DNA of 63,112 nt, the filler included, from Perkinsus chesapeaki ATCC PRA-425 (taxonomy: Eukaryota; Protista; Perkinsozoa): assembly GCA_013115145.1 (NCBI GenBank). It is 7 parts of 7 records of this genome, joined end to end, with 100 filler letters (N's around TTAATTAATTAA, not from the genome) between each part and the next. Parts side by side here need not be neighbours in the genome. Positions count along the whole stretch, not along the records: positions 3,278 to 19,908 come from JAAPAO010000702.1; 6 more parts are not named here. One strand, given 5' to 3'. The translations under genes and the position numbers were made by a program. Below, in pieces: positions 3,178 through 20,072 of the stretch. Below the pieces are notes generated by a model, which did no database searches, had not been told where the DNA came from, and saw nothing but the letters and a program-made list of their open reading frames with translations. Numbering within the stretch: position 1 is the stretch's first letter; the number at the start of each line of letters is the position of its first letter.

Positions 3178-3278
3178 NNNNNNNNNNNNNNNNNNNNNNN
3201 NNNNNNNNNNNNNNNNNNNNNTTAATTAATTAANNNNNNNNNNNNNNNNNNNNNNNNNNNNNNNNNNNNNNNNNNNNG
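3178..3278. other. Artificial contig linker (Ns + TTAATTAATTAA + Ns)
   Basis: Same design recurs at 19909-20008, 28560-28659, 48639-48738, 58927-59026 and 61241-61340; the 12-mer puts stops in all six frames. Confidence 0.98.
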
Positions 3279-4494
3279 AGTAAAGGATCAGGATCAAATA
3301 TCACGGATCGAGATCAAGGATCATGGATCTAGCGCAAGCATTTCGGATCACGTTTGATTTGGCTCAGACAAGAAGATCGCTGAGTGATCCAGATCATCGG
3401 CTCGATCCATGGATTAGGATCCGCATACCGGCCCAGGGCGAAGCTGGTGCGAGCCCAGAGGGGGGTCCTATGGGAGGCCGAAGGGCCGAATAATAGGTAT
3501 CCCTATTGGCGCGGCGGGGTTCGGAAGACAAGGGGCACCCATTGTCAGGTGTTGTTCTCTGAGTGGAACACGCCAAAAAGGACGAGGCGCTTCCTGTGGC
3601 AATGTATTCCTCACAGGAGTGAAACGCGCCTATAATCACCAGTGAGAAAAAACGATTTACCCCTACCCACACTCCCGTGCCTTTGGCATTTCAATTTTCT
3701 ACTAAGTTCACTGTTAGCTTAATGTTATACGTAGAACTCATAATGTATAACTGGGACACTGGTTACTGTCATCACTCCACTGAAAAGGTTATCAACTATA
3801 TTACTGAAAGGAAATACACTTAGTGTTCCCAGTGTAGCACGACGACGACAGCAGACTTTCATTATTAATTCATATCATCAATGACCAGCATGATTATGAT
3901 ATGTGATTAAGATTATTTGCTGCTGCTGGCTTAGCTAATAGTTATTATTATGATTGGGATGTAATCAATGATATACAAGGTGATAAGCAATCTAAAGGGG
4001 GTCTAAAGTTTGATATAGTGTACGTAAAAACAATAATTATTGGGTTTGCCCTGGGCGGTAATGTAGAGCGGACAAAAGTTCGGAACTTAGGTGGCGACGG
4101 AGGCTATCCGAAATATCACTATGCGAGTAACAGCAGCAGCAGCTATACAATAAGGATAATCACCGACTAAGCTTATTAAAGAACATATAAACAGTGAGAA
4201 ACTAGTGACGTTAAAGAAATACTGAGGATATAGAACAGAACAATACTACTGTATGATTAATGTCGATGTTGTTGTTGTTATTATTATAACAACTGTTGTT
4301 ATTATTATTAATAACTCAACATTATAATAAACTCTTGGAGCCTATCTTACTGAGCACCACAAGCCGAAGTTCTTATTATTATTATACAATGATTATTATT
4401 TACTCTCTGTTACCCGTACTGCTGCTGTTAATAAATATTATTAACAGTTGTTAGCATATTAATAATCTTTGTATTATAATAATATTAATAATAT

Positions 4495-5473
4495 TTACCA
4501 TTGATCAGCACTAGCTGCAGCCCAATCACCACCAGTAGCACCAGTCCATTCTTCACCTTCCTCATAATAAGGAGCAGCAGTACCAGCAGCACCGCCGCCA
4601 GCAGCATTACCAGTAGTATCATCATTAGCAGCACCACCAGTAGTCTCAATCATAGTATTCTTTGATGCTTCATATGCAGCAGCTTCAGCAGCCATACGTT
4701 CTTGACGTTCAATCTCCTCAGGATCTCTCCAAAAGAATGAGTCAACCATAACTTCCCATTCAACACCACGAGCTATCTTACCACGTAGCATTAATACTTC
4801 ACGTGCAAGAAGATAATAAAGAAGTGCAATGCTCTCTTTACCCTTATTATTACAAGGAATAGCGATATCAACAAAATCCAATGGAGAGTCGGTATCACAT
4901 AAAGCGATAACAGGGATATTAGCATAAGCAGCTTCCTTAATGGCTTGAGAATCAGTACGAGGATCAGTAACAATCAATAAACGAGGCTCAGAGTACTTAG
5001 GGGTAATCTGATTAGTTAAAGAACCAGGAGTCCAACGTCCAGCAACAGCAGTAGCACCAATAAAGTTAGCCAACTTTAATACAGCACGTGAACCATAAGG
5101 ACGCTGTGATACAACCATAATATCTTTAGGATTCTCAATAGTAACCATAACACGGGCAGCAATCATAAGCTTTTCCCAAGTCTTACCTAATAAAATAATA
5201 GACTACTATTATTGATGTTAACACTATTATTACCCAAGTTAATAAGGTTAATACCATCTTTATTACGCTTAAAGACATAACGTTTCATACGATAATCAAG
5301 ATTACGAGTACCAAGATGAGTCTAATAATAATATTAAATGATGATGCTATAGTAGGAATTGTTAATATTATTATTACACTGCAAACTAACATTTTCTGAA
5401 TATCCTGCTCCTTCTGTGAAGTTGGATTATAGACGGCTGCTGCTGCTGCTTGAGTGGCAGTGGTATCAGCCAT
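4495..5473 (-). CDS. RPSA: 40S ribosomal protein SA (uS2), 3 exons: 5473-5378, 5321-5234, 5186-4495
   Basis: Spliced product ...DIQKMLVCS|[30 protein letters not shown]|[11 protein letters not shown]...[11 protein letters not shown]...[10 protein letters not shown]; GT-AG introns of 56 and 47 nt keep the frame. Confidence 0.98.
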
Positions 5474-5674
5474 GTTGTATTAATATCCAAGAAACAACGG
5501 CTAAACAAGAAGAACAGTACATCATCAATAAGGGGGGGGTACCTCTGCGCGGACGCCCTAAACACACATTAATCGATTAACTAATCGACCATTCTAAATA
5601 CACGCTAATTTAGAGTATATCAAGATTTACCAAGATTGCAAGATTTACAACATATACATCTTATCTATACTATT

Positions 5675-5943
5675 TCAAAGGTATTATTATTATATAACAC
5701 ATGACATATTTAATGTTAATATTTANNNNNNNNNNNNNNNNNNNNNNNNNNNNNNNNNNNNNNNNNNNNNNNNNNNNNNNNNNNNNNNNNNNNNNNNNNN
5801 NNNNNNNNNNNNNNNNNNNTATTAATAAAGGTATTATTATTATATAACACATGACATATTTAATGTTAATATTAATAAAGGTATTATTATTATATAACAC
5901 ATGACATATTTAATGTTAATATTAATAAAGGTATTATTATTAT
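5675..5943. repeat. 50-bp minisatellite spanning an N gap (5726-5819)
   Basis: Unit attaataaaggtattattattatataacacatgacatatttaatgttaat repeats exactly at 5821 and 5871, with partial copies on both sides of the gap. Confidence 0.93.
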
Positions 5944-5961
5944 AATCATCCACTTACCGTA

Positions 5962-7045
5962 GAAGTAAACACAAACTTGTATTTCTTCTCGGATGGATCA
6001 GTCATAGATAAAGGTAACGTGTCCTCTGCCAAGACTGGAGCAGGCACGATCCTCTATGCTCCAGAGAAACCACTAGGTTTTAAGGGACGTGCATATTACA
6101 CAGGAGAATAAACCAACATAGCTGCTCAATGTGAACTAGTTGGATGAGTTGAACGATCGCTGGTCTGGGCCAACGAAATCGCTAGAACACGGGTGGATCT
6201 CAAAAACCTATATATCTGCCTAGACTCGCAGGCCGCACTCCGAGCAATACAGAATGCCCTACACAATTCTGATTGCACTGAACTTACCCTGGATATTGTG
6301 AAGCAGACACACAAATGGCTGGTGGGTGGGTGCGTGGACACTGTTGACACATTGACAATGAGCTCAGTGATATATTCGTAGAGGGGAGGTGAAGAACCCC
6401 ATCCCACGACAGGTGTTAGGAAATCCCTATCCTTCACGAAACATGAGGTAACTTGCCTGGCGGAAACAGAGTAACAGTCTTCTCGCAGTCTCCTCCAGAA
6501 TAGGCCTAGGCCTCGTTGGGCGTACTACCCAATTGGGAAAGAAGCTGGCAGTGAAGACGCTTGAATGGAATAGTCGAAGAAGATAGGCATCTCTTTGATT
6601 TCCTTACATTACACAGCAATACAAAAGGATATAAACAATGAGACACTGTAAGGATTACAGACAAGAAGATATGGCTCATTTCTTCTGGTGTCCGTCAGTG
6701 AAACTTACAATAGAACTCAAAGAATAAATATGGATAGACAAAAAGTTTACTCGTCCCCTATCTGGAGAGCGCATGCTCATCCGTGACTCCATTGTTGGAG
6801 AAGGTAGAGGACTCTACAGAGTGCGACGATTCCTCAGGAGAGCTACCCCAGTATGGGGAGAACCAAGAATGGAAAAGAGTGGTGTGGACCCACTGCTGCA
6901 TCCTGGACCGCAGTAAAGGTAAAGTTGAAACTATCACGGTTGGTATAAACAGTAAACGGATGTGAGATCTATATACGAATGGCATCGTGTACGCTGCCGG
7001 AGGCCACACACCCATACTGCCTAGCAGGAGATGCTGTGCCTCCAG
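5962..7045 (+). pseudogene. Decayed non-LTR retrotransposon fragment (RNase H domain plus degenerate 3' part)
   Basis: One frame from 5962 reads LYFFSDGS...GAGTIL...E*TNIAAQCELVG*...YICLDSQAALRAIQN: the three RNase H acidic motifs (DGS, EL, DSQAAL) with in-frame stops, in a higher-GC block inside AT-rich DNA. Confidence 0.85.
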
Positions 7046-7535
7046 ATAAATAATATAAAAATATAATCATTAACTATAACACTTAAGTGACACTTGTTAC
7101 TCTAATTGGTTTGAGAAATTATTAAAATGATGATATGAGAGTATGGTATGCTGATGCTTTTACTAGTAGTATATTCTGTATAACGAGATAATATACTTCA
7201 ACAACACAATAGTGTATTTATTAAGTAGTAAACTGCTATTAATATTAATATCGCATAAACTGATTATGATTATCATAATTACTATTAAGGATATATCCTA
7301 ATAGTAATACATAAAGGGGCAGGCATCATCAGCAATAACAATAATAACACTATTAGCAGCATCACCATCAATATGGAGGAGGAGGAGTATCATCTTCACC
7401 AACACCACCATCACTACTACGACCAGTCTTATATGCAGTCAAAAACGATAATAGTTATTGTAGCTGCTGTATTATAATCACTAATACTCCCATCTTGATG
7501 ATGATCATCTTATCGTTGTTGTTATTGTAGTATTA

Positions 7536-8193
7536 TTACTCAGAGTATAATAATACACCAGCAATAAGAATAACCAATATAGCCTGAATAATAATAATAT
7601 CATCTGTAATATTAAATATTAATACTTACCAAGAATTCTAAGAAACCCATACCGATAAGAGTATAAGTGAATAGATCTTCTTTCATACTGGGATTTCTAG
7701 CAATACCAACAACTAATGCAGCAAATAACTGACCAATGCCCTGAGCACAACCACCAACAGCAACAACAGCAATAGCAGCACCAAGAACAGATGTACCTAT
7801 TATAAATATCATTATTGACAATATCATTAATACTGATATATAATATGCACTAACCTGCACATCTAATCTGTTGTTGATTATTATTAAATGTACTTGGAAT
7901 ATTACGATATACACTTGATAATAGAGAGGTATCTGATTAATAAGTGATATATTCATATAATATATATTACTATTACTATTTGATGATGATGATGATTTAA
8001 CCATCATATTAGGGGCGGATCTAGTACTAGTAGTAGAATACCCACATTTACTAGTATTTGACATCATACTCGTGAAACGATTTAATACAACAGATGATGA
8101 GCCAGCAGCAGTATTAAGGAATAAACGAGTAGCCGATGGTATCATCATACGACTGGTGCTGACGAGGGTGGTATTATTACGGAACATCATCAT
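7536..8193 (-). CDS. atp9: Nuclear-encoded mitochondrial ATP synthase subunit c with long presequence, multi-exon; last exon 7583-7536
   Basis: AIAVVAVGGCAQGIGQLFAALVVGIARNPSMKEDLFTYTLIGMGFLEFL|AILVILIAGVLLYSE*; Ser/Thr/Arg-rich N-terminal targeting peptide. Confidence 0.95.
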
Positions 8194-8406
8194 ACCGCTA
8201 AAATATAATAATACATAATATTATAGATATAACAATAATAATACCTGTTCATATTGTTGATGTTGTTATTGAGGGTAGAAAAAAGGGGGGAGGAGGAGGA
8301 GCAATAGAGAGGATGCTACTACCAACTACAAACAATAACAAGTAGTAGCTTAAGCAGCGTAGACCTAGAACAACAACAAATAACAAATAACAACAAATAA
8401 TACAAA

Positions 8407-8448
8407 TGCATGAAAATTGCATGACAACAGAAAATTCCTAAATGCATG
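8407..8448. promoter_or_regulatory. Three TGCATG motifs in the divergent atp9/MIF4G intergenic region
   Basis: TGCATG at 8407-8412, 8418-8423 and 8443-8448, between ATGs at 8193(-) and 8519(+). Confidence 0.45.
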
Positions 8449-8518
8449 TAAGATTTGCTGCACTTGTTGTTCGCGTACTTGCTCTTTATCTTCTCTTTAT
8501 AGTGCGACCGTAACCGTT

Positions 8519-9334
8519 ATGGTTAATCTCTACTATTGCATTAAATACTGTATTATATTAATAATGTTATCATTATTATGGTGGTATTATGATATTACAT
8601 TAGAGATAATTGCATTATTATTATTTATTTATGGTTATTATATATCATCATTTAATATATCATCATCAATGAATATAACAAATAATAATACCGGCATTCA
8701 TGTTGATGATATACATAAAATATCTGATAATAAAATTATAATACATTATAAGACATCATATAATAGAAGTAAATTATTAAATAAGTTTATTAATAATAAT
8801 ATGTTAGATAAAATTAAGTCAATGGATGATGATAATACTAAAAAGTGGCGTATATTAATTAATAAATTAAATTATAATAACATTGATATAATAACGAATA
8901 ATATATTAAATATAAATGATAAAGATTATAATAAATTAATATATTTAATATTTCAAGCAGCAATTAGAACCAATAATTCATCACGATTATACATAGATTT
9001 AATAATAAATCTAATCGATTATAATGATGATTATAATGATGATATATATAATAATATCAATAATATATGTAATAATATTTACGATGATTATATAATTAAT
9101 CCACCTAATTATGATAATATGAATGATATTAGTGATAAAGATGATAATATAAATAGATTAAAATCCCGTACAATATCATTCTTAAAATTTGTTGGTGGTC
9201 TATATGCATCAGGATTGTTAATAAAAGATGATATAATATATAAATGGGTTATTACTGATAAATTTGGTGGTAATAATAATATTAGATATAATGAATATGT
9301 ATGTTGCATAATAGATGGTATTGTTGATTATTGT

Positions 9335-9365
<31 letters not shown>

Positions 9366-9568
9366 TAAATAATGGTGATACTATCATATATATAATTGAC
9401 TTATTAAAAAATAATATGGATAATAATATAACAATTAGAGATAAATGTCTTATAAACAATATGTTAGATAAATATAATAATCTAATATTTAATAGTAGAG
9501 TATATGATAATAATAATTCAGAAGAAAGTAGAAAAATAATACGTTTAACAGGCGTAAGAGGATGTTAA
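8519..9568 (+). CDS. MIF4G-domain (eIF4G-middle-like) protein with N-terminal hydrophobic segment, Asn-rich, intronless
   Basis: YLIFQAAIRTNNSSRLYIDLI and KSRTISFLKFVGGLY resemble MIF4G helices (LIFEKA...; KRR.LG.IKFIGELY); pyrimidine tract ending TATAG just before ATG 8519. Confidence 0.6.
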
Positions 9569-9700
9569 ATGACATCATCATGATCGTTATTGTTAACATC
9601 AAGTTGATTATTATTAATAATAATATATGCATGTTATTGTTGTTATTACTACCATCATATCTATTGTGTTATTATAGTCGTATTAATATTATTAATAGTT

Positions 9701-12700
9701 ATGTGTTTTATACAATATGAAAGTTTGTTATTGATATCAATTATTGGTAATATTTTAATATCGGGCCGCATAAATAATAATATTAATTCGTTATATAGTA
9801 AGGTATATAAATATTATATTAATAATAATAATAATGAATTATGGTATAAAAAGGGTATTAAATGTGATAATAATATTATTATAAATATATTAAAATATGA
9901 TGGTAAAGATGATATTAATTTGGATAATAATGAGAATAATAATGAATGTAATATTGCTGTTATTGATGATTATTTAAATAATATCAATAATCCATCATTC
10001 GATATAACATTCTATACAAATTCTTATTTTACTAAACCTTATTACAATAATGATAAGACTATTATACCACCATTTAGAGGTAGTATTAAATATAATAACA
10101 ACGATTATGATGATGATGATGATGATAGTAGTAATGATAATATAATATATCATTTTGATAATAATATATACAATGAAAAGCCATTAACATACCTATTGAC
10201 TCATAAAAATAGGCTATTATCTGCTTTATTTATTGATTATAATAATGACAATGACAATGTTATTATTAATGATGCTATCAAAGCATTAGGAAGGAGTAAT
10301 GTATATTTTATTGATAATAATATAATTAATAAAACAAGAATTATTAAAGATGGTGTTAATAATTACGTATTTACTATAATATATTATAATAATAATGGCA
10401 GACTAAATGATGATACATTATTATTTGGTGATATATTATCGTATCCATCGTATATAATATTAAAAGCTTTAGAATATCATACAATACCAATAATACAATC
10501 TAGAGATACTAAATTTTGGATACCACTTGGCATTAAAGCAGAAGATGCATTATGGAGAATAACAGGAGGATTCAACTATACACAAGCAATACCATTCTTA
10601 TTAAATTTAATAAATGGTGATGCTGGTTATCATGATTATAATAGTAACAATGATGATTATGATGATAGTACTAGTAGTAAAATGAATGATATAATAATGT
10701 ATAGATATTTAAATTTAAGATATTTACAAGATTCATTTATATATAATTATGGTATACCACCAGAATCAAGATTATATATAACATCATGCATATTATGTAA
10801 ACATAAACTATTAATACAACAACAGCAACAACAACAACAAGAACAACAACAGCAACAACAACAACAACAGCAAGAACAACAACAACAGCAACAACAACAA
10901 CAGCAAGAACAACAACAACAACAAGAACAACAACAGCAAGAACAACAACAGCAAGAACAACAACAACAACAACAGCAAGAACAACAACAGCAAGAACAAC
11001 AACAGCAAGAACAACAAGAACAAGATGACGATGATTCTGCTTCAGTGGTAGTAGCAGATGCTAAGGATCTGATGTATGGTAATAGTGGTGGTGGTGATGA
11101 TGATAAAGTGGGGATGGCTAGGGATGGTTATATATTCGTTGGTATATTTAGTAAAGTAGATAATTATGAATTACGTAAAGCGATACGTAATACATGGTTA
11201 AATGATATAATATCAAATAAATATAGTGTAAATGATAATATTATGTGATAATAATAAATGGGTTATAATAATATTATTATTAGGTCTATAAATTCTTTAT
11301 TGGTACTAAATTCAATGATAATAATAATAATAGCAACAACAACAACAACACTGTAAATATTAATAAGGAGGATGATAATGATGATGATGATAATGATGAT
11401 ATAAGTTCATCATCATCATCATATGAACATAGGTTCTATAATGATATTATAGAATTGGATGTAAAAGAATCATACAGGAATATAACCTTAAAGAGTATCT
11501 TAATGTAGTAGTAGTAGTGGGTGGGTGGAGGGGTGGAGGGGGTTAATATGATTATTATTATTATTAGGTATAAGTGGATTATTGATAATAATAAATTATT
11601 ATATAATAATAAGATAATATATTTTATGAGAGTTGATGATGATATATATTTAAGACCATTACCAATAATTGAACAATTAATTTATAATACTATACCAGTT
11701 AGATATTGGTGGGGATCATTTGCATATTTAAGCTCAGTATCACGCAATATTAGTAATATTAAAGAATATAATACATATAAACAATATCCATATAATATTA
11801 ACACATTTCCATTATATACAAGAGGTATATTATATGTAATAACAATTGATATTATTGATGAGATAATAAATACAATAAATAATAATATTATTACATTACA
11901 ACAACAACAACAACAACAACAACAAGAAGAAGAAGAAGAACAAGGAAATGATAATATTTATGAACTACTACCTCACCCCGATGATGTTGCATTAGGATAT
12001 TTAATGTAATTATTATTATATTTAATACATCATCATCAGCAGCAGCAGCAGCTTATTATTATTACAGTCATACGCGTCATCTACGTACAACAACGAGGCG
12101 CGCTTCTTGACAATGTTCGATTCATATCTCAAATATAACTTAGAGTTTTCGCTTAATTCATCCGCTATATACCTTAGAAATGTCTCTTATCATCATGGGA
12201 TCCAAGTTGCCGAATCCGAACACCCAAAAAACTATTTGCGTTTTCATGCCCCACGCTTTGGCTGCTGACCCATCTCGTTTGATTACTCCTTTGCTGCTGT
12301 ATCCATGTACCCCACGATATTAGAGTATTCATGAGGAATGGAGGTATACTCGATTAGATTATCGTAGGATTATCGACCAGGACAGTCAGCCTCACTCTGA
12401 ATGACAGTCTCAATGTTTATCATTTTTGTGCTTCAAGTCACTTAAACAGAAGCTACCGGAATCATCTAAAAGTCTTAGAAAAAGAGAGCAACTTAGAGCA
12501 GCAGCATCATCATCATCAATGGTACTTGGTGAATAAGAGGAGGGGACACTCCTAGCTATTGCAACTATACTTGTGAATAAGAGGACTGGACACTCCTAGC
12601 TATTGCAACTATACTTGTGAATAAGAGGAGGGGACACTCCTAGCTATTGCAACTATACTTGTGAATAAGAGGAGGGGACACTCCTAGCTATCGCAACTAT

Positions 12701-13456
12701 ACTTGTGAATAAGAGGAGGGGACACTCCTAGCTATTGCAACTATACTTGTGAATAAGAGGAGGGGACACTCCTAGCTATTGCAACTATACTTGTGAATAA
12801 GAGGAGGGGACACTCCTAGCTATTGCAACTATACTTGTGAATAAGAGGAGGGGACACTCCTAGCCATTGCAACTATACTTGTGCCTTGTTCATATTCGAC
12901 CCCTACCCTTAGAAACCCAATGTATCCCAAATACTCCAATGCTACTGTGTCTCTGTTCAGTGGTGCTTAGTGAGCCGGCAGCCGCGGGGCATGAAAAGGC
13001 GCGCAGAGGCTCGAAAACGCAAATAGTTTTTTGGGTGTTCGGATTCGGCAACTTGGATCCCATGATGATACGAGACATTTCTAAGGTATATAGCGGATGA
13101 ATTAAGCGAAAACTCTAAGTTATACTTGAGATATGAATCGAACATTGTCAAGAAGCGCGCCTCGTTGTTGTACGTAGATGACGCGTATGACTGTACGACT
13201 TAGATATTTATTAATATCAAACAGAAGTAATCATATTATTATTGATGATAAAGATGAGAATAGAATATCATTAAATCCATATTGTTATCATAAATTCTCA
13301 CAATTACATAATAATAGAACATGGGCAATACACCATGTAACAGCATCACAAATTAATTGTATGTGGAATATTGATAATAATAATAATAGAGGAAGAAGAA
13401 GATTAATACGGCGGAATGGATATCCAAATCTTTGCCCATGTAATACTATATCTTGA
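9701..13456 (+). CDS. Glycosyltransferase: exostosin/GT47-like N-terminal region, poly-Q linker, GT31 beta-1,3-galactosyltransferase domain; last intron (12006-13203) holds a TIR element
   Basis: GT31 motifs FVGIFS...ELRKAIRNTW, VYKFFIG, DIIELDVKESYRNITLK, FMRVDDDIY, FPLYTRGILYV, PDDVALG, last exon AIHHVTASQINCMW. N-terminal LKALEYHTIPII...FWIPL only loosely matches GT47. Confidence 0.8.
10814..11022 (+). repeat. CAA/CAG/GAA trinucleotide tract encoding poly-Q/E linker
   Basis: About 70 codons of Q/E between the two predicted domains. Confidence 0.95.
12065..13193. mobile_element. Non-autonomous Tc1/mariner-type element, 1129 bp, long TIRs, TA target duplication
   Basis: TA|CAGTCATACGCG...CGCGTATGACTG|TA. 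TIRs 12065-12252 and 12986-13193 differ by 2 substitutions and one 20-bp indel. No transposase ORF. Confidence 0.93.
12529..12880. repeat. 8 x 44-bp tandem array inside the TIR element
   Basis: Unit gtgaataagaggaggggacactcctagctattgcaactatactt starts at 12529, 12573, 12617, 12661, 12705, 12749, 12793, 12837. Confidence 0.97.
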
Positions 13457-13643
13457 TAGTCCTTTTATTATTATAAAATAATAATATTATGTATTAGGTG
13501 TTAAGCAGCAACAACAACAAGATAATAATAATAATGATGATGATTGGGATTCAGGTTATGAAAGATATGTCCCATAATTATAATATGATAACTTTAATGT
13601 TGATTATTATTATCATCATGTTTATTAATATTGTAATTGTCGT

Positions 13644-13681
<38 letters not shown>

Positions 13682-13748
13682 GAACCTTATTATTATCATG
13701 TTATCATTATTAGGGTTTATGTTACGTAGTCACTCTCATTATTAGTTT

Positions 13749-14847
13749 ATGGAATTATTAATGGAAACAACAACAACAACAACAATTCAACAACAAACTC
13801 AAACTCATAATAATGAGAATGATGATATATCCTTAAATATTTCACTACTAGGAACTACTGAGAGAAATAGAATATCAACAGTAACAACATCATCATCATC
13901 ATCAGGAGAGGTGAGTAGTAGTAATAATAATAAAGAATATGATAATGCTTATGCTGTGGCTGCTAATGGTAATACTGACGGCGGCGGCGGCGGTGGCGGC
14001 AATGATGATGATGATGCTGCACTAACTAACATACATGAGACATTACTTAAAATATTAGTAATAATAATTATTATATCATATAGCATCATCAGTATTAGTA
14101 ATTACCTATTATTATTTATATTTAGAATATGTGTGATAAAGTTGATAATATTATGGTAGTACAAGACGATAGTAGTAGTAGTAGTAAAAAGGATAAGAAA
14201 AAGAATAAGAAAAGGAAGAAGAATCATAATAATAATTATTATAACGATGATGATGATAGTAATAAAAGTAATAATAGAACAATTTGTGAAATTTTATCTT
14301 TATCTATGGAATATTATTCAGAGGATGGTGATGATGATGATATGAATAAAGGTGGTGATGGTGATGATGAGGATAGTAAGTATAATAATAATGGTGGTGA
14401 TGGTGATGGTTGTTATTTATCCGATTATCTTATAAATATTATTAATCAATTAAATAGGTTAAAAGAAGAAGGCTATGTATTAAAAAATAATAATAAAATA
14501 CCTATTAATGAGTCATCGACATCAACAACAAGAAGCAGAGAAGGTGGTGGTGCTGGAAATGATTTGACAATATCATCATCAAAATATGATAATAATGAGA
14601 AGGACGATGATGCAGCAGATGATATTATGTGTTATGTACCAGAAGATGTTGTGATATCAATATTTAGATGCGCTGAATCAGGAAGTTATGAACAAATAAA
14701 AGAAAGCGTAATATGAATAATATAATTATAAATTATTATTAATATTATTAGATTAATAATCACATTAATGATCTACGTAACTCACGTGATAGGCTCGGTG
14801 ATCAAGAAATGTTAATAAATGAGTTTAAAAAAGAACTATTAAAATAA
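13749..14847 (+). CDS. Hypothetical low-complexity protein, about 3 exons; start uncertain
   Basis: Exons join in frame (ETLLKIL|NMCDKVD...EQIKES|INNHIND...KELLK*); no recognisable domain. Confidence 0.5.
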
Positions 14848-14977
14848 TACAATACAAACAATAATATTTATTAATAATCATAATATTGTGTTATAATCTT
14901 TAATATATATAACAACAACAACAAGACCAGAAAGAAGGGTATGTGAAACGTTTTTATAATTATTTTTAATATCATCA

Positions 14978-16515
14978 TCATGCAATATAGTTAATATTAT
15001 TATTAATAATAGCATCAGTTATTGTCTCAATTAATAATGGTTTATTACCCCGAGGTACTTGTTGTTTAATATTATATCTATTAAAAAATTAATATTTATT
15101 ATTGTATATTATTATTAATACCTTATAATGTTCTTTAATTCATCAACACGTAATTTACTTAATTTAGTGCGCAATGTCGTTATATCATTTCGTAACAATA
15201 ATAATGATGATATTATATTATTATACCATCTTTTATTATTATCATATTCCTTATTTAATGATGATGTATGTGTGTGCGGTGGCGGCGGCCGCGGCAACAA
15301 TGATAATTTAATACCATTATTATTAAGTGGTATATTAATAGTTAATGATTCTTTAGAATAACCAGCTGAATTGAATGATGTTACATATACAATCATTCTA
15401 TCATAATAAAAGAACTTTGAGAATCTATTAATAACAACAACAACAACGTCGTCATCGTCATCCTATTAGTATTACCTTGCATCATCTTCTGATATAACAA
15501 TCCATGGATCACTACTATCAACAACACTTCCGACTGGATACCTCTCATCATTCAACTTATCTGGTAATTGAAGAAATACGTAATATTTATCAATTTTATT
15601 ATTATTATTATCGAGTGGTGGTGATGTCCAATGTATCTATATTAATATATTATAAATTATTACTCATAATAACATTATTACTTCAATTGTCCTTTTACCA
15701 CTTTTACTTTTACATATTTTATATATATCATTATCATACATTGATATTATTGGTGTTGGCGGTCTCTTTACAGTTTTACATTCGAGTAAACTTTCACACT
15801 AACAACAACAACAAATAATAATAATAATAATAACAACAACAACCACCATCGTAATCCAACATGAACTAATAATTATTATTATTATTATTATTACTACCTT
15901 CTTTTTAGCATCATTAACCTTTTGTACTGCATCACTTAATAATGTAATCATATTATTATTATTATCTTTATTATTTTTCCAATTCACTGGTGCTTTATCT
16001 GGGTGTAATATTAATATTAATTTGGCCCATCTCTTTTTAACATCTAATAATAAAAACTACAACAACAATAATAAGATGTAAGTATTAATAATAAAGAGCA
16101 TCATACTACTACTACCTGTGATAGTGATAACATTATTATCATTATTATCTAATCCTAATGTTGCAAATGGGCAATGTGTATTATTTAATGCTTGATGCAC
16201 AATTTTACCAAAATCACAATTAGTATCATAATCATAATAACTTGTACCATCATGTGATGTTGCAGCAGCAGCAGGATCAGGAGCAGCAGTATTATTATAA
16301 ACATTACTTCCTCTACCTTCTTCTTTCTGTTGCTGTTGTTGTTGATTATATAATTTAATTGTTGTCTCAAGCTGATAATAATAATTATTGTTATCACAAA
16401 GCGGTCCCATCAACACCACCACCATTGTTATTACTTCCCTTTTAGCGTGCCTTATCGCATTTATAGCATTCTCATCTTTCACTATTTTTAATAATTTAAT
16501 AAACGATTTACCCAA
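14978..16515 (-). CDS. J-domain (DnaJ) protein with C-terminal SAP domain (3' exons)
   Basis: PFATLGL...DVKKRWAKLILILHPDKAPVNW...LSDAVQKVNDAKK (HPD motif near 16000); C-terminus LSKLRVDELKNIIR|YNIKQQVPRGNKPLLIETITDA (SAP pattern); TGA at 14978. Confidence 0.75.
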
Positions 16516-16576
16516 ATCTGATTATTAAGTTTATTATTAATAATAATAACAAGCCTCAGCTTAATTATTACTTTCA

Positions 16577-16928
16577 ATGCTTGCATCTTGCATCACCATT
16601 TCATTATTATCATTATTCTTACTGCTGCTACACTCCATCATTCCACCACCACCACCATCTCCTTCTCCTCGTCTATTATTATTGTTGTTATTTAATGATT
16701 TCAATGTGAATAATTTCCATGGATTGCTCTTTGCTAATTCTATTATTTTCTTACTATTATTTAATATTAATATCGGTAGATATGGTAGGGTTGTTATATC
16801 ATCAACATCATCATCAACATCATCATTGTTCTTGTCTTCATTCTCACTTTTATTATTATTACATTCCTGATAGTAATAATAATAATATGAATAATTATCA
16901 GGTATTATTATAGTGAGCGTAGTAGTAG

Positions 16929-16962
<34 letters not shown>

Positions 16963-19803
16963 AAAGTTGTTATTACTTTATGTTGTGGTAATGTTAAACT
17001 ATCCCTACTTCTTCTTGTTCTTGGTGTTATTGTTGTTGTTGATATTATTCCTTTTAATAGTTTATTACGATATTTATTATTATTAACTATTGAATTATTA
17101 TAATAATTATTATAATAATTATCATTATTACATTCATTATCATTTTCTATATTATAATCCATTTTACCAGTATATAACCAATATAATCTATTAATGATAA
17201 TAATAATAATAAGTATATTTATATATTATTACTCTTTATTATTCATAGCCCATATTGAGTCAACTATTGATGATATCAATTCTGATTTTTCAATAATATT
17301 ATTATTACTAATACCGATTCGTTGGCATAAATATTTAACCTACTACTAATAATAGTATCCTATTTATTATTATATTAATAATACACATAATACACTACTA
17401 CTCCTATTAATAATACACATAATACACTACTACTCCTATTAATAATACACATAATACACTACTACTCCTATTAATAATNNNNNNNNNNNNNNNNNNNNNN
17501 NNNNNNNNNNNNNNNNNNNNNNNNNNNNNNNNNNNNNNNNNNNNNNNNNNNNNNNNNNNNNNNNNNNNNNNNNNNNATATTCATTATTCTATTATTATTA
17601 TTACTGTGGATATGTTGAGTATTCTTCTACCTTCCATATATAACCATTCTTTATTAATATAACTATAATCATTATCATTATTATCTATCCTCCTCTTTGT
17701 AGTCTTATTATTATTATTATCATGATGATGATTATCGTTTATTGTAACACCTTCAGTATCAACTTTATTCTTCTTAATAATATTATATCCTTCATTATCA
17801 TTATCATCATCTTCTTTTTCATCTTCTCTCATTCTTTTTTTATTATTAGTTATATTATTAATAGATGAAGATATAATATATAGTGCGGTGTTAACATCAT
17901 TTGCCGTTATAATAAAATTATTATTATCATTTAATGTTAATAATGGTGTATTATTACTACTACTCATAACTCCCCCTCCTCCTACTCCAATAAGGAGCTT
18001 ATTTAAAGGATGCACATACTTAGTGTTAAATTGCTCAATTAACATATCATTATTAACATTCATATTATTATCATTATTAACTATATTCTTCATAATATAA
18101 CGTACCTTATAATATTATTAATATTCATTATAATAACTATTATTATTATTACCAATAATACTACTGGACTGATATTTATAGGCTTATTAGGTACCTGCTG
18201 CTGCTCTTTAATATTCCTTATCTTCTTCATCATGTCATCATCATCAGCATTATCATCATCATTTATAACCATAATAATTAAATATTATTATTAACTATTG
18301 AAAAGTGTGTTTAATATTACTACTACCAATAACAAACAATAGTGACATAATAAGAAACAATATTAACTTATGATGTTCCTCTCATTATTATCCTACAGTA
18401 TTATTATTATTATTATTATTGTGTTGTTGTAGTTGTTGAAGGGGTTGTTGCCCATACAGCTGATTTAGGAATATGCTCAGTTACTTTCCAATCAATAACT
18501 TCATCTCTTAGTGTTGCTATATTATCATTTCTATCAACTAAATATCTGATAATAATAATAATAAGGATCAATAGTATCAATTATATTACTACTACTTACT
18601 CAAATGATTCATAATTATCATTAGCGTTACTATTAACATTATATGCTATATCAATACATTTATATAACCAATTACCTGATATATATATACAATAATAATA
18701 TATCATTATTATTAGTACTAATCTTATCCATGGTTTTATAATTATTATTATTTGATAATAATCTTAATAATGTTAATCTTAATATATCTATTTGATAATA
18801 ATCAGTACTATCATAATCATTTGATGATGATGATGAATATGATGACATGATATTGATATCCATACCAATACGATCTATAACATGATCAATCATCCAATCT
18901 AAAAAATAATAAAGGATACACCACAGTCATGTTGTTCTATTACAATATTATTAATATACATATTATTACTTTTTAAACCATCAACTTTAATTAAAGTTCT
19001 CATTGTATTACTATTATATATTGCATATATTCCATATTTATTATTGTTAATAGTATCAGCTAATCTATTACCATGTTTCTCTATTAATGTATATAAATCA
19101 TATGATATATTCCAATTACTATATTCAATATCTTTATTATAATTATCAATATCATTATTTAATTCCTTAATCTTATTTCGTGTTAATCCAATATCCTCCA
19201 TTATATTAATAGATCTTGTATTACCTATTATTACTATTAATATTTATATCCATATATTATTACCACCTTTATTGCCTTCTCTTATTAATATATCATTATT
19301 ATTTAAAGCTCTATCATTTAACTGTGATTCAGCTTCTGTTAATTCATTTATTCTATATGATCTAATAATAATATTTAATAATACAGATTGCAACAACTAA
19401 CACATATTATTATTATAATTATTATTATTACAATTCTCCTTGTATTATTTTAGTCTGTTGTTGAGTTTTAAATGTAAATATACCAACAATAATAGTAATA
19501 ATAAATAATATAATAATCAACTGAATAATAATACAAATATATATAATACTATAATATTATTATTACCTTATTTGATGGTAAATATGAATTATTTTTATTA
19601 TTCGTGTTGTAATTATGATTACTATCTTCATGTTTTAAATCTGCACTATTATTATTAATAGTAGTATTATGAAGTGTATTCACGCTTGATGATGAAGATG
19701 AAGGTAATGATTTCCTAACCATATTATTCAAAAACAATAACAGTAGTAGTAATAATAGAGAGTAAACCCCACATAAACGCGACGCCGCCGTGTCGGCCAA
19801 CAT
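16577..19803 (-). CDS. Upstream coding exons, probably the 5' part of the J/SAP gene or a separate hypothetical gene; structure unresolved
   Basis: Series of minus-strand Asn-rich ORF segments separated by GT-AG micro-introns; candidate ATG at 19803 next to a GC-rich upstream island; N gap at 17479-17576. Confidence 0.45.
17378..17478. repeat. 32-bp minisatellite running into an N gap
   Basis: ctcctatta recurs at 17401, 17433, 17465 (period 32). Confidence 0.9.
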
Positions 19804-20072
19804 CGCCACCGTACGGGCCCAACGTATGTCACTTTCGGGCCCAACGTATGTCATACCAAAAAAGGTGGTTTAGACGAAGAAAAACGCGGGCCTTCGGCCC
19901 GCTATAGTNNNNNNNNNNNNNNNNNNNNNNNNNNNNNNNNNNNNNNNNNNNNTTAATTAATTAANNNNNNNNNNNNNNNNNNNNNNNNNNNNNNNNNNNN
20001 NNNNNNNNTAACTGATGTCACGACGGAGCGAAGTAAAGCACGTTTCGCAACTTTCCCACTTCCATCTCCGAG

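Follow-up and report, generated by a model that had tools for sequence, protein, structure and literature searches.

The window (the whole 63,112-nucleotide stretch of Perkinsus chesapeaki DNA that we analysed) carries, in the part derived from JAAPAO010000702.1, a beta-1,3-galactosyltransferase-like gene whose third intron harbours a 1,129-bp element with long terminal inverted repeats (TIRs). The features of the locus, with the basis of each assignment, are the following:

11568-12005, plus strand: upstream exon, ending ...PDDVALGYL (PF01762 Galactosyl_T; P. olseni protein P0043)
12006-13203, plus strand: host intron 3, phase 2, GTAATT...CTTAG, 1,198 nt (frame reasoning)
12063-12064, no strand: left TA, putative target-site duplication copy 1 (sequence; family-wide TA flanks)
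12065-12250, plus strand: left TIR, tip CAGTCATACGCGTCATCTACGTACAACAACGAGGCGCGCTTCTTGACAA (arm alignment; homology to other TIR loci)
12065-12067, plus strand: look-alike 3' splice site, the terminal CAG right after TTATTATTATTA (sequence; use putative)
12251-12522, no strand: left unique interior, non-coding (colinear with element C3294 at 71-81%; no transposase similarity)
12523-12883, no strand: tandem array of 8.2 x 44 bp, confined to this copy (single unit in C3294)
12884-13007, no strand: right unique interior, non-coding (within an 81% match to C3294)
13008-13193, minus strand: right TIR (arm alignment)
13194-13195, no strand: right TA, putative target-site duplication copy 2 (sequence)
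13204-13456, plus strand: downstream exon, (I)YLLISNRSNHIIIDDKDENRISLNPYC...WAIHHVTASQINCMWN, stop at 13454-13456 (ORF frame; in frame with the upstream exon)

The upstream exon matched the Galactosyl_T profile PF01762 (E 5e-9, profile positions 79-169 of 195). The homolog of the gene is P. olseni protein P0043, which is similarly low in complexity and whose gene model ends before the junction. The downstream exon alone gave no Pfam match, and we infer the exon junction 12005/13204 from the reading frames and the Pfam match of the upstream exon; a second candidate acceptor AG, also in frame, is present at 13223-13224. Removing the element and one TA leaves 12006-12064 (59 nt) and 13196-13203 (8 nt), that is an intron of 67 nt, and 10 nt separate the last base of the element (13193) from the exon start at 13204. 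The sequence-only reading of this locus had arrived at both figures and its arithmetic was correct. The two other introns of the gene measure 56 and 63 nt and end in ATTATTATTAG. Since the splice sites and the 67 nt lie outside the element, the intron would have existed before the insertion, and the locus is consistent with an element sitting in a short pre-existing intron of a beta-1,3-galactosyltransferase-like gene.

The element itself (12065-13193) was confirmed as a long-TIR element with nearly identical arms. A repeat search placed the arms at 12063-12250 and 13008-13195; with the TA flanks counted in, each is 188 nt long, and complementarity is 98%. A separate alignment counted from the tips found 179 of 181 nt identical, with mismatches at positions 69 and 123; beyond the first 181 nt the similarity fades, reaching about position 210. 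Tandem repeats are absent from the arms, the sole array being central and not inverted. No ORF inside the element exceeds 77 aa or resembles the family transposase, in line with the earlier claim that no transposase is encoded. G+C content is 43.3% in the element vs 26.0% in the 2 kb on either side. TA is found at both flanks, as throughout the family; as neither an empty-site nor an allelic copy of the insertion was found in the P. chesapeaki assembly, we infer the duplication of the TA, which had been taken as given, from these family-wide flanks.

Upon splicing the element presumably leaves with the intron, though its terminal CAG might serve as a rival acceptor. If the CAG at 12065-12067 were used, the intron would shrink to 62 nt and the transposon would be read as exon up to a stop after 14 codons within the element, yielding a truncated galactosyltransferase allele. 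The insertion indeed creates TTATTATTATTACAG at 12053-12067 in a gene with ATTATTATTAG at the end of its other introns; at 13202-13203 the true acceptor now lies behind a G+C-rich TIR, 1.1 kb from the tract, and an intron of 1,198 nt is unusual for a gene with introns of 56-63 nt. However, in the predicted fold of the intron RNA the TIRs pair as a stem of ~190 bp (MFE -555.8 kcal/mol). This duplex would bury the CAG and bring the tract beside the original acceptor, an arrangement in favour of normal splicing, and the downstream ORF remains open to 13456. We regard use of the CAG as possible but unlikely. An improbable extension of normal splicing is that the arm duplex (~180 bp) itself loops out the transposon and rejoins the TTATTATTATTA tract to the original acceptor, allowing a gene with 56-67-nt introns to splice one of 1.2 kb; the same duplex could feed a dsRNA/small-RNA or SOS-splicing-like pathway. 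Were this true, long-TIR elements would be tolerated, even favoured, in short introns.

The interior of the element is colinear with that of one other element, C3294, at 71-87% identity, and the 81% match spans the last array unit through to the right arm. Similarity between the interior and the transposase gene was not detected, and on this sequence comparison the interior does not descend from that gene by deletion. The closest other copy being 71-87% identical, with no sibling above 90% and none exceeding 87%, recent mobility is not supported by any close sibling copy; the youth that had been claimed for the insertion is plausible but unproven, the assembly also containing no empty-site allele.

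The tandem array at 12523-12883 has a period of 44, 8.2 copies, 97% matches and zero indels, and thus bears out the eight 44-bp units first read from the sequence. The AGGAG-n6-CTCCT stem ascribed to each of them is present in seven of the eight full units, unit 2 having AGGAC. A search of the 41.7-Mb assembly with a 37-mer of the unit (up to 3 mismatches) returned eight matches, every one inside this array. Apart from the array and a lone version in C3294, the 44-bp unit was found nowhere else in the P. chesapeaki assembly, and an exact unit search of metagenome contigs gave 0 matches. C3294 possesses a single unit that is bracketed by 6-bp direct repeats (ATACTT...ATACTT) and has a weaker stem (AGGAG/CTTCT). 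Because the unit is single in C3294 and absent from the rest of the assembly, the array is, as judged from these copies, a private expansion by slippage or unequal exchange. The sequence-only reading had itself taken confinement of the 44-mer to this copy as the mark of local slippage, and confinement is what we found.

The single-unit hairpin did not fold significantly better than shuffles on the two strands (z-scores -1.85 and -0.64), and two adjoining units did so with a z-score of -2.97. A two-unit fold better than shuffles is what tandem repeats that contain a palindrome generally show. A search of Rfam gave sub-threshold chance matches and no family at threshold. One might argue that the array is a selected functional module carried by the element, a hairpin or binding platform or a small-RNA source, as its units are almost invariant, the stem is largely kept and the two-unit fold exceeds shuffles. 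We consider this very improbable: the array occurs in one genome copy, its closest relative has one unit with an altered stem, the single-unit fold is non-significant on either strand, Rfam offers no family, and recent expansion yields near-identical units without selection. Very probably, array and 5-bp stem arose as by-products and do not act as a functional module. The proposed protein-binding platform is not supported, given a single-copy array and a hairpin no better than shuffles, and neither is the proposed satellite seed spread by the element, given the confinement of the array to one copy and the single unit of C3294.

The TIRs define a family of which the assembly contains at least 21 termini, with the tip TA-CAGTACGCGTCATCTAGAACGCGCGCTTCTTGACAA in common. 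The conserved tip 36-mer gave 21 matches at up to 3 mismatches and its reversed control 0, and about 19 further TIR loci matched the TIR of the element at 73-87% identity in the assembly search. Of the 18 termini inspected, 16 have a TA before their CAGT tip, and the copies C58, C833 and C3366 are TA-flanked on either side. C833 (2.28 kb) and C58 (1.78 kb) carry family tips and broken transposase remnants; both are internally deleted and lack the catalytic core, and TIR positions 34-173 of the element match them at 73-76%. The sole near-complete transposase, C2885, is frameshifted, 62% identical and flanked by other TIRs. The other family copies carry transposase remnants or are solo TIRs in ordinary DNA, with partner arms of the 13 apparently solo TIRs sought within 1.5 kb. 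An exact family-tip search of metagenome contigs gave 0 matches. Tc1-like elements of the IR-DR subgroup have two direct-repeat binding sites in each long inverted repeat; when outer and inner TIR were aligned to look for them, the alignment was no better than shuffles in the element, C833, C58 and C3294, and C3366, a related element, alone reached significance.

The tips of the 12065-13193 copy deviate from the conserved 36-mer by private insertions in both arms. An autonomous partner with the same ends had been suggested as a check; related protein-coding copies do exist, but their tips are CAGTACGCG and not the CAGTCATACG of the element, and none is intact. No intact autonomous copy with the ends of the element was found among the 3,544 contigs of the assembly, where absence is weak evidence. 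The same enzyme may not recognise the variant tips.

Two further readings were weighed. In the first, which we find barely credible, the element is an introner-type transposon whose insertion itself created the intron. It makes up 94% of the intron, and Perkinsus is related to dinoflagellates and Syndiniales, for which TIR-bearing intron-generating elements have been described (PMC7789003, PMC9860276, PMC12130899, bioRxiv 10.1101/2020.10.14.339549). Yet both splice sites are outside the element (GT at 12006, 59 nt upstream; AG at 13202-3, 8 nt downstream), its removal leaves an intron of the size and style of the gene's others, and the other family copies are, as noted, carriers of transposase remnants or solo TIRs in ordinary DNA. 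The least credible reading is an assembly artefact in which an A+T-rich contig, foreign or contaminant in origin, wrongly received a Perkinsus repeat of normal G+C: the 43% G+C element does lie between 26% flanks in a genome otherwise of 44-50% G+C, with A+T-rich, poly-N/poly-Q genes atypical for Perkinsus, but the junctions are exact (TA-CAGT...ACTG-TA), excision restores a well-formed short in-frame intron, the same contig begins G+C-normal, the best homolog of the host gene is the P. olseni protein, and the flanks of C833 and C2885 are likewise A+T-rich.

Direct Pfam, PDB-sequence and DDE_3 genome scans gave no DDE match for the transposase, so we classified it through a collection of homologs and a fold search. 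The longest homolog, C2885, aligns to proteins of Perkinsus marinus, P. olseni and P. chesapeaki at 55-98% identity. The relatives of the transposase being from Perkinsus, a dictyostelid origin and the thug/DDT elements, at first suggested by the A+T-rich, poly-N/Q surroundings, were dropped; a literature search for those elements came up empty. An alignment of 15 members shows D168, D269 and E388 to be fully or almost fully conserved, and a spacer of ~118 residues separates the second D from the E. Nine of the 15 homologs match PF13358 DDE_3, covering the last catalytic motif only, and four match HTH_33; the HTH_23, HTH_33 and HTH_28 matches are all below the Pfam cut-offs (E 6e-5 to 7e-2). 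The structure model of the transposase is mediocre (mean pLDDT 55), and its best fold matches are the Metnase transposase domain (Z 8.6, 184 aligned), Mos1 (Z 8.3/8.2) and Sleeping Beauty (Z 6.2). Judged by the DDE_3 and sub-cut-off HTH matches in its relatives and a predicted core nearest to Metnase, Mos1 and Sleeping Beauty, the family belongs to the IS630-Tc1-mariner superfamily, and 12065-13193 is a non-autonomous member. Gene prediction has fused transposase fragments into host gene models, one example being P0016, in which a transposase piece is joined to a cathepsin-like peptidase.

Taken together, the locus very probably represents a non-autonomous Perkinsus element of the IS630-Tc1-mariner type in a 67-nt galactosyltransferase intron, with a copy-private array expansion that, like its stem, is a by-product and not a module. 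In this scenario the element would have inserted at a TA of an originally 67-nt intron of the P. chesapeaki gene. With the protein-coding family members it would have only the ~190-bp terminal inverted repeats in common, and its movement would need a transposase supplied in trans that, by analogy to Tc1/mariner, binds the ends, cuts at CAGT and integrates anew at TA. The non-coding interior is common to this copy and C3294. After divergence, the ATACTT-bracketed 44-bp stretch may have been duplicated by replication slippage or unequal exchange to give eight units in one copy.

The value of the locus lies mainly in annotation, as it defines a Tc1/mariner-type ("cut-and-paste") family of the shellfish parasite Perkinsus with tips TA-CAGTACGCG... 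and arms of ~200 bp; it reveals neither a new kind of element nor a new function. The D-to-E spacer of the family transposase is unusually long, and the Pfam DDE_3 model misses the enzyme. Moreover, the birth of a minisatellite inside a transposon can be followed here, as the sister element still preserves the single-copy precursor together with the microhomology around it.

Long-TIR non-autonomous elements of the IS630-Tc1-mariner superfamily include Tc3, Minos, S and Sleeping Beauty-type elements as well as MITE-like derivatives. The Perkinsus element resembles Tc1/mariner elements in its TA target, its CAGT-starting termini, its inverted repeats of ~190-200 bp and its putative dependence on an enzyme in trans, and the family transposase does so in its putative N-terminal HTH motifs (sub-cut-off) and a DDE core with a predicted fold nearest to Metnase, Mos1 and Sleeping Beauty. 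It differs in that the family transposase spaces the second D from the E by ~118 and not 34-41 residues, that Pfam DDE_3 scores no direct match and that IR-DR repeats are not evident in the element. Unlike a classical MITE in the strict sense (below ~800 bp, many near-identical copies), the element measures 1.1 kb and has a single close copy, and unlike FB-type foldback elements, whose arms consist of tandem subrepeats, it confines its repeats to the centre.

Tandem repeats carried or seeded by transposons have been described for Tetris in Drosophila virilis (PMC4079207) and reviewed as a route from transposable element to satellite (PMC6947457, PMC9659126, PMC12628747). The Perkinsus array is similar in being a short-unit array within a TIR element, made from the element's own sequence. 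The known arrays, in contrast, are multi-copy and/or form long arrays of their own, whereas this one occurs once, with eight units, beside a sister with one. Introners occur in dinoflagellates, Syndiniales and other eukaryotes (PMC9860276, PMC12130899, PMC7789003). The present element shares with them a myzozoan host and the structure of a TIR-bearing, TSD-flanked non-coding DNA element that constitutes almost a whole spliceosomal intron, but here both splice sites, with 67 nt of intron, are external to the element. Finally, in SOS splicing, which is described in C. elegans and human cells for exonic elements, pairing of inverted repeats triggers removal of DNA transposons from mRNAs (PMC12779559). 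Like these substrates, the element transcript is predicted to form a perfectly paired TIR duplex of ~180 bp; unlike the exonic elements of that report, the Perkinsus element would already be excised by ordinary removal of the host intron.

Positions 12065-13193 are a real, well-delimited non-autonomous Tc1/mariner-type element inside a pre-existing short intron, and the element carries a minisatellite private to this copy. Its value lies in annotation and in a small splice-site question. The relevant features of the window are:

11228-11283: host intron, 56 nt, fixed by comparison with P0043, the P. olseni Galactosyl_T homolog of the host gene
11505-11567: host intron, 63 nt, fixed in the same way
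11568-12005: upstream exon, Galactosyl_T PF01762 (E 5e-9), ending ...PDDVALGYL
12063-12250 and 13008-13195: inverted arms, 98% complementary over 188 nt with the flanking TA counted in (repeat finding)
12523-12883: tandem array, 44-bp unit x 8.2, 97% matches, no indels (Tandem Repeats Finder)

In our own alignment, 179/181 nt of the arms are identical from the CAGT tips, after which similarity fades to about position 210. This bears out the near-identical long TIRs described in the sequence-only reading, as do the 8.2 copies for its eight 44-bp units, with AGGAG-n6-CTCCT in seven of the eight full ones. It had also stated that no transposase is encoded; indeed, no ORF within the element exceeds 77 aa, and its interior showed no similarity to transposase at the protein or DNA level. 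Judged by its sequence, the window copy is not a deletion derivative of a transposase-coding element. G+C is 43.3% in the element versus 26.0% in its flanks.

Searching the 41.7-Mb P. chesapeaki assembly with the left arm gave about 19 further loci of 73-87% identity. Those that were lined up all start CAGTACGCGTCATCTAGAACGCGCGCTTCTTGACAA, with TA before the tip in 16/18, and the 36-mer family tip occurs 21 times at <=3 mismatches (reversed control, 0), which bears on the TIR copy number proposed for checking. Complete elements include:

contig C58: 1.78 kb, arms 199 nt, 99%, TA on both sides
contig C833: 2.28 kb, arms 202 nt, 96%, TA on both sides

Two family tips also face each other 216 bp apart at G000:C136:68794-69009, a miniature tip-to-tip derivative, and on C263 a pair pointing the same way is spaced by 173 bp (2545 and 2718). 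Against the conserved tip, the window copy carries insertions, CAT after CAGT and CGTACAACAACGAG in place of the others' GAAC, which are the same in left and right arm. The two differences between its arms suggest a young copy, and its array units differ by only four substitutions. To this extent the proposed young insertion is plausible, but the assembly contains no sibling copy above 87% identity and no empty allele. Arm-to-arm conversion or an unsampled subfamily can also be the source of the private indels common to both arms. Unlike the window copy, the C833/C58/C2914/C2823 subgroup, whose copies are 96-98% alike, looks more recently active.

The interior is colinear with that of one other element, on C3294, at 71-87% identity. 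Matching blocks (element positions, then C3294 positions) are:

79-173 and 78-169
192-276 and 229-307
326-427 and 690-785
767-1096 and 1290-1601

The C3294 interior is longer by about 880 bp. The two elements hold a common non-coding cargo between family-type arms. The right tip of the C3294 element (L028, G000:C3294:10931-12551; CAGTTGTACGCATGCGTTGATCTTCCCTCCGCGCGCGCC...) is strongly diverged from its left tip; over 200 nt its two arms agree at 79%, with inner parts 96-99% alike, and the contig stops 3 nt past the right tip.

All eight array units align to a single C3294 site, positions 1290-1337, which reads ATACTTGGTGCATAGGAGGGGACACTTCTAGCTACTCTAACT/ATACTT/CCTTT, that is, one unit between 6-bp direct repeats, with a weakened "stem" (AGGAG/CTTCT). 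Window unit 1 retains the ancestral ACTTGGTG and units 2-8 open with ATACTTGTG, its downstream counterpart, the pattern that exchange between the two flanking repeats should leave. We infer that the array is a private, recent expansion by slippage or unequal exchange. The ideas that it is a satellite seed or a binding platform are refuted within this assembly by the sequence-only reading's own test, the 44-mer occurring only at this array: we found no other copy in the whole assembly (132-nt query; 37-mer at <=3 mismatches), and an exact scan of metagenome contigs gave 0. Folding of the single-unit hairpin did not significantly exceed that of shuffles (+ strand z -1.85, - strand z -0.64), and Rfam gave no match at threshold. 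Two further minisatellites in the window are perfect (100%), one of 50 bp x 2.5 (5820-5944) and one of 32 bp x 3.3 (17373-17478), so recent tandem duplication is common in the region and not special to the transposon.

Splicing from GT at 12006 to AG at 13202-3 would keep the frame, with an ORF open to 13456; an alternative in-frame acceptor AG lies at 13223-4. The proposed junction 12005/13204 was set by frame logic, with exons handled separately. As had been calculated, removing the element and one TA leaves 67 nt, in line with the neighbouring 56- and 63-nt introns. ATTATTATTAG closes both of these; the 63-nt one shares its TTAAT/GTA donor and its phase with the element-bearing third intron. 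The insertion sets the element's own CAG (12065-67) directly after TTATTATTATTA, a point absent from the sequence-only reading, and this CAG could in principle serve as acceptor instead of the original one, with a stop after 14 codons. However, the predicted intron RNA fold (MFE -555.8 kcal/mol) buries it within a roughly 190-bp stem that brings the tract and the original acceptor side by side. The element's CAG is an acceptor look-alike; the element presumably leaves with the intron at the original acceptor, though this CAG may compete with it.

The element's context is A+T-rich, with poly-N/poly-Q ORFs, features that hinted at a social amoeba, an origin that proved wrong. Twenty sampled contigs have 38-52% G+C and the genome is otherwise 44-50%, whereas C3174 (window 3278-19908) has about 35-43% over 3278-7300, where a ribosomal protein SA-like ORF lies at 4495-5166, and then 19-29% over all that follows (at least 11 kb), a part rich in ORFs with poly-N, poly-Q and poly-D runs and in short introns that are themselves A+T-rich. 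The best homolog of the host gene, from P. olseni, is a Galactosyl_T protein of similarly low complexity. This homolog, the Perkinsus relatives of the transposase and the contig's G+C-normal start at about 40%, which falls off after about 5 kb, rule out a contaminant and place the stretch in the Perkinsus genome; P. chesapeaki seems to have sharply A+T-rich gene islands. A+T-rich flanks also occur at C833 and C2885. By eye, the ORF at 7612-8193 (-) in this stretch has a long N-terminal extension rich in Ser and Asn, after which it closes with sequence typical of ATP synthase subunit c (proteolipid; ...GAAIAVVAVGGCAQGIGQLFAALVVGIARNPSMKEDLFTYTLIGMGFLEF); we presume a nuclear gene whose product has a mitochondrial presequence.

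An autonomous partner was found only in pieces. C833 and C58, elements with family tips, have ORFs that cover the N- and C-terminal portions of a single protein. Homologs of it at other loci of the genome are up to 550-560 aa long, but the middle is missing in C833 and C2886 and retained only in C2885, behind a frameshift. The C2885 locus (L032, G000:C2885:8779-12405) is the most complete superfamily transposase in the genome (one frameshift; ORFs 165-869 and 658-2340); its sole detectable inverted repeats, 27 nt, are unrelated to the CAGTACGCG family, and the second arm falls within the 3' end of the ORF. The C833 ORF matches protein P0016 at 224/230 residues, agreeing at every one past the first seven aligned positions. 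This public P. chesapeaki gene model (792 aa; element L027, G000:C833:11726-14005) joins a Peptidase_C1/Inhibitor_I29 protein to a C-terminal transposase remnant, probably an annotation artefact from an unmasked element.

Pfam gave only sub-threshold HTH_23 and HTH_33 on the family proteins, a DDE_3 model scan of the genome did not pick them up, and a PDB sequence search found no match. Of 42 collected homologs, the closest belong to Perkinsus marinus, P. olseni and P. chesapeaki, and those further off bear PF13358 or PF13592, or the name Tc1-like transposase. Aligning 15 members showed full or almost full conservation of D168/E169, D269 and E388; DDE_3, which spans only the last motif, matches 9/15 members and HTH_33 4/15. 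Compared with 48,161 representative chains, the AlphaFold2 model (mean pLDDT 55; residues 240-385 at 74-95) came closest to the transposase domain of Metnase (Z 8.6, rmsd 3.9, 184 aligned), followed by Mos1 (Z 8.3, 8.2) and then Sleeping Beauty (Z 6.2); the top Foldseek row was Mos1, weakly (E 0.15), and the ESM Atlas neighbours were DDE_3 clusters. Homologs with their conserved residues, predicted fold, TA target and CAGT tips together place the family in the IS630-Tc1-mariner superfamily; the spacer that separates its second D from the E is unusually long, at about 118 residues.
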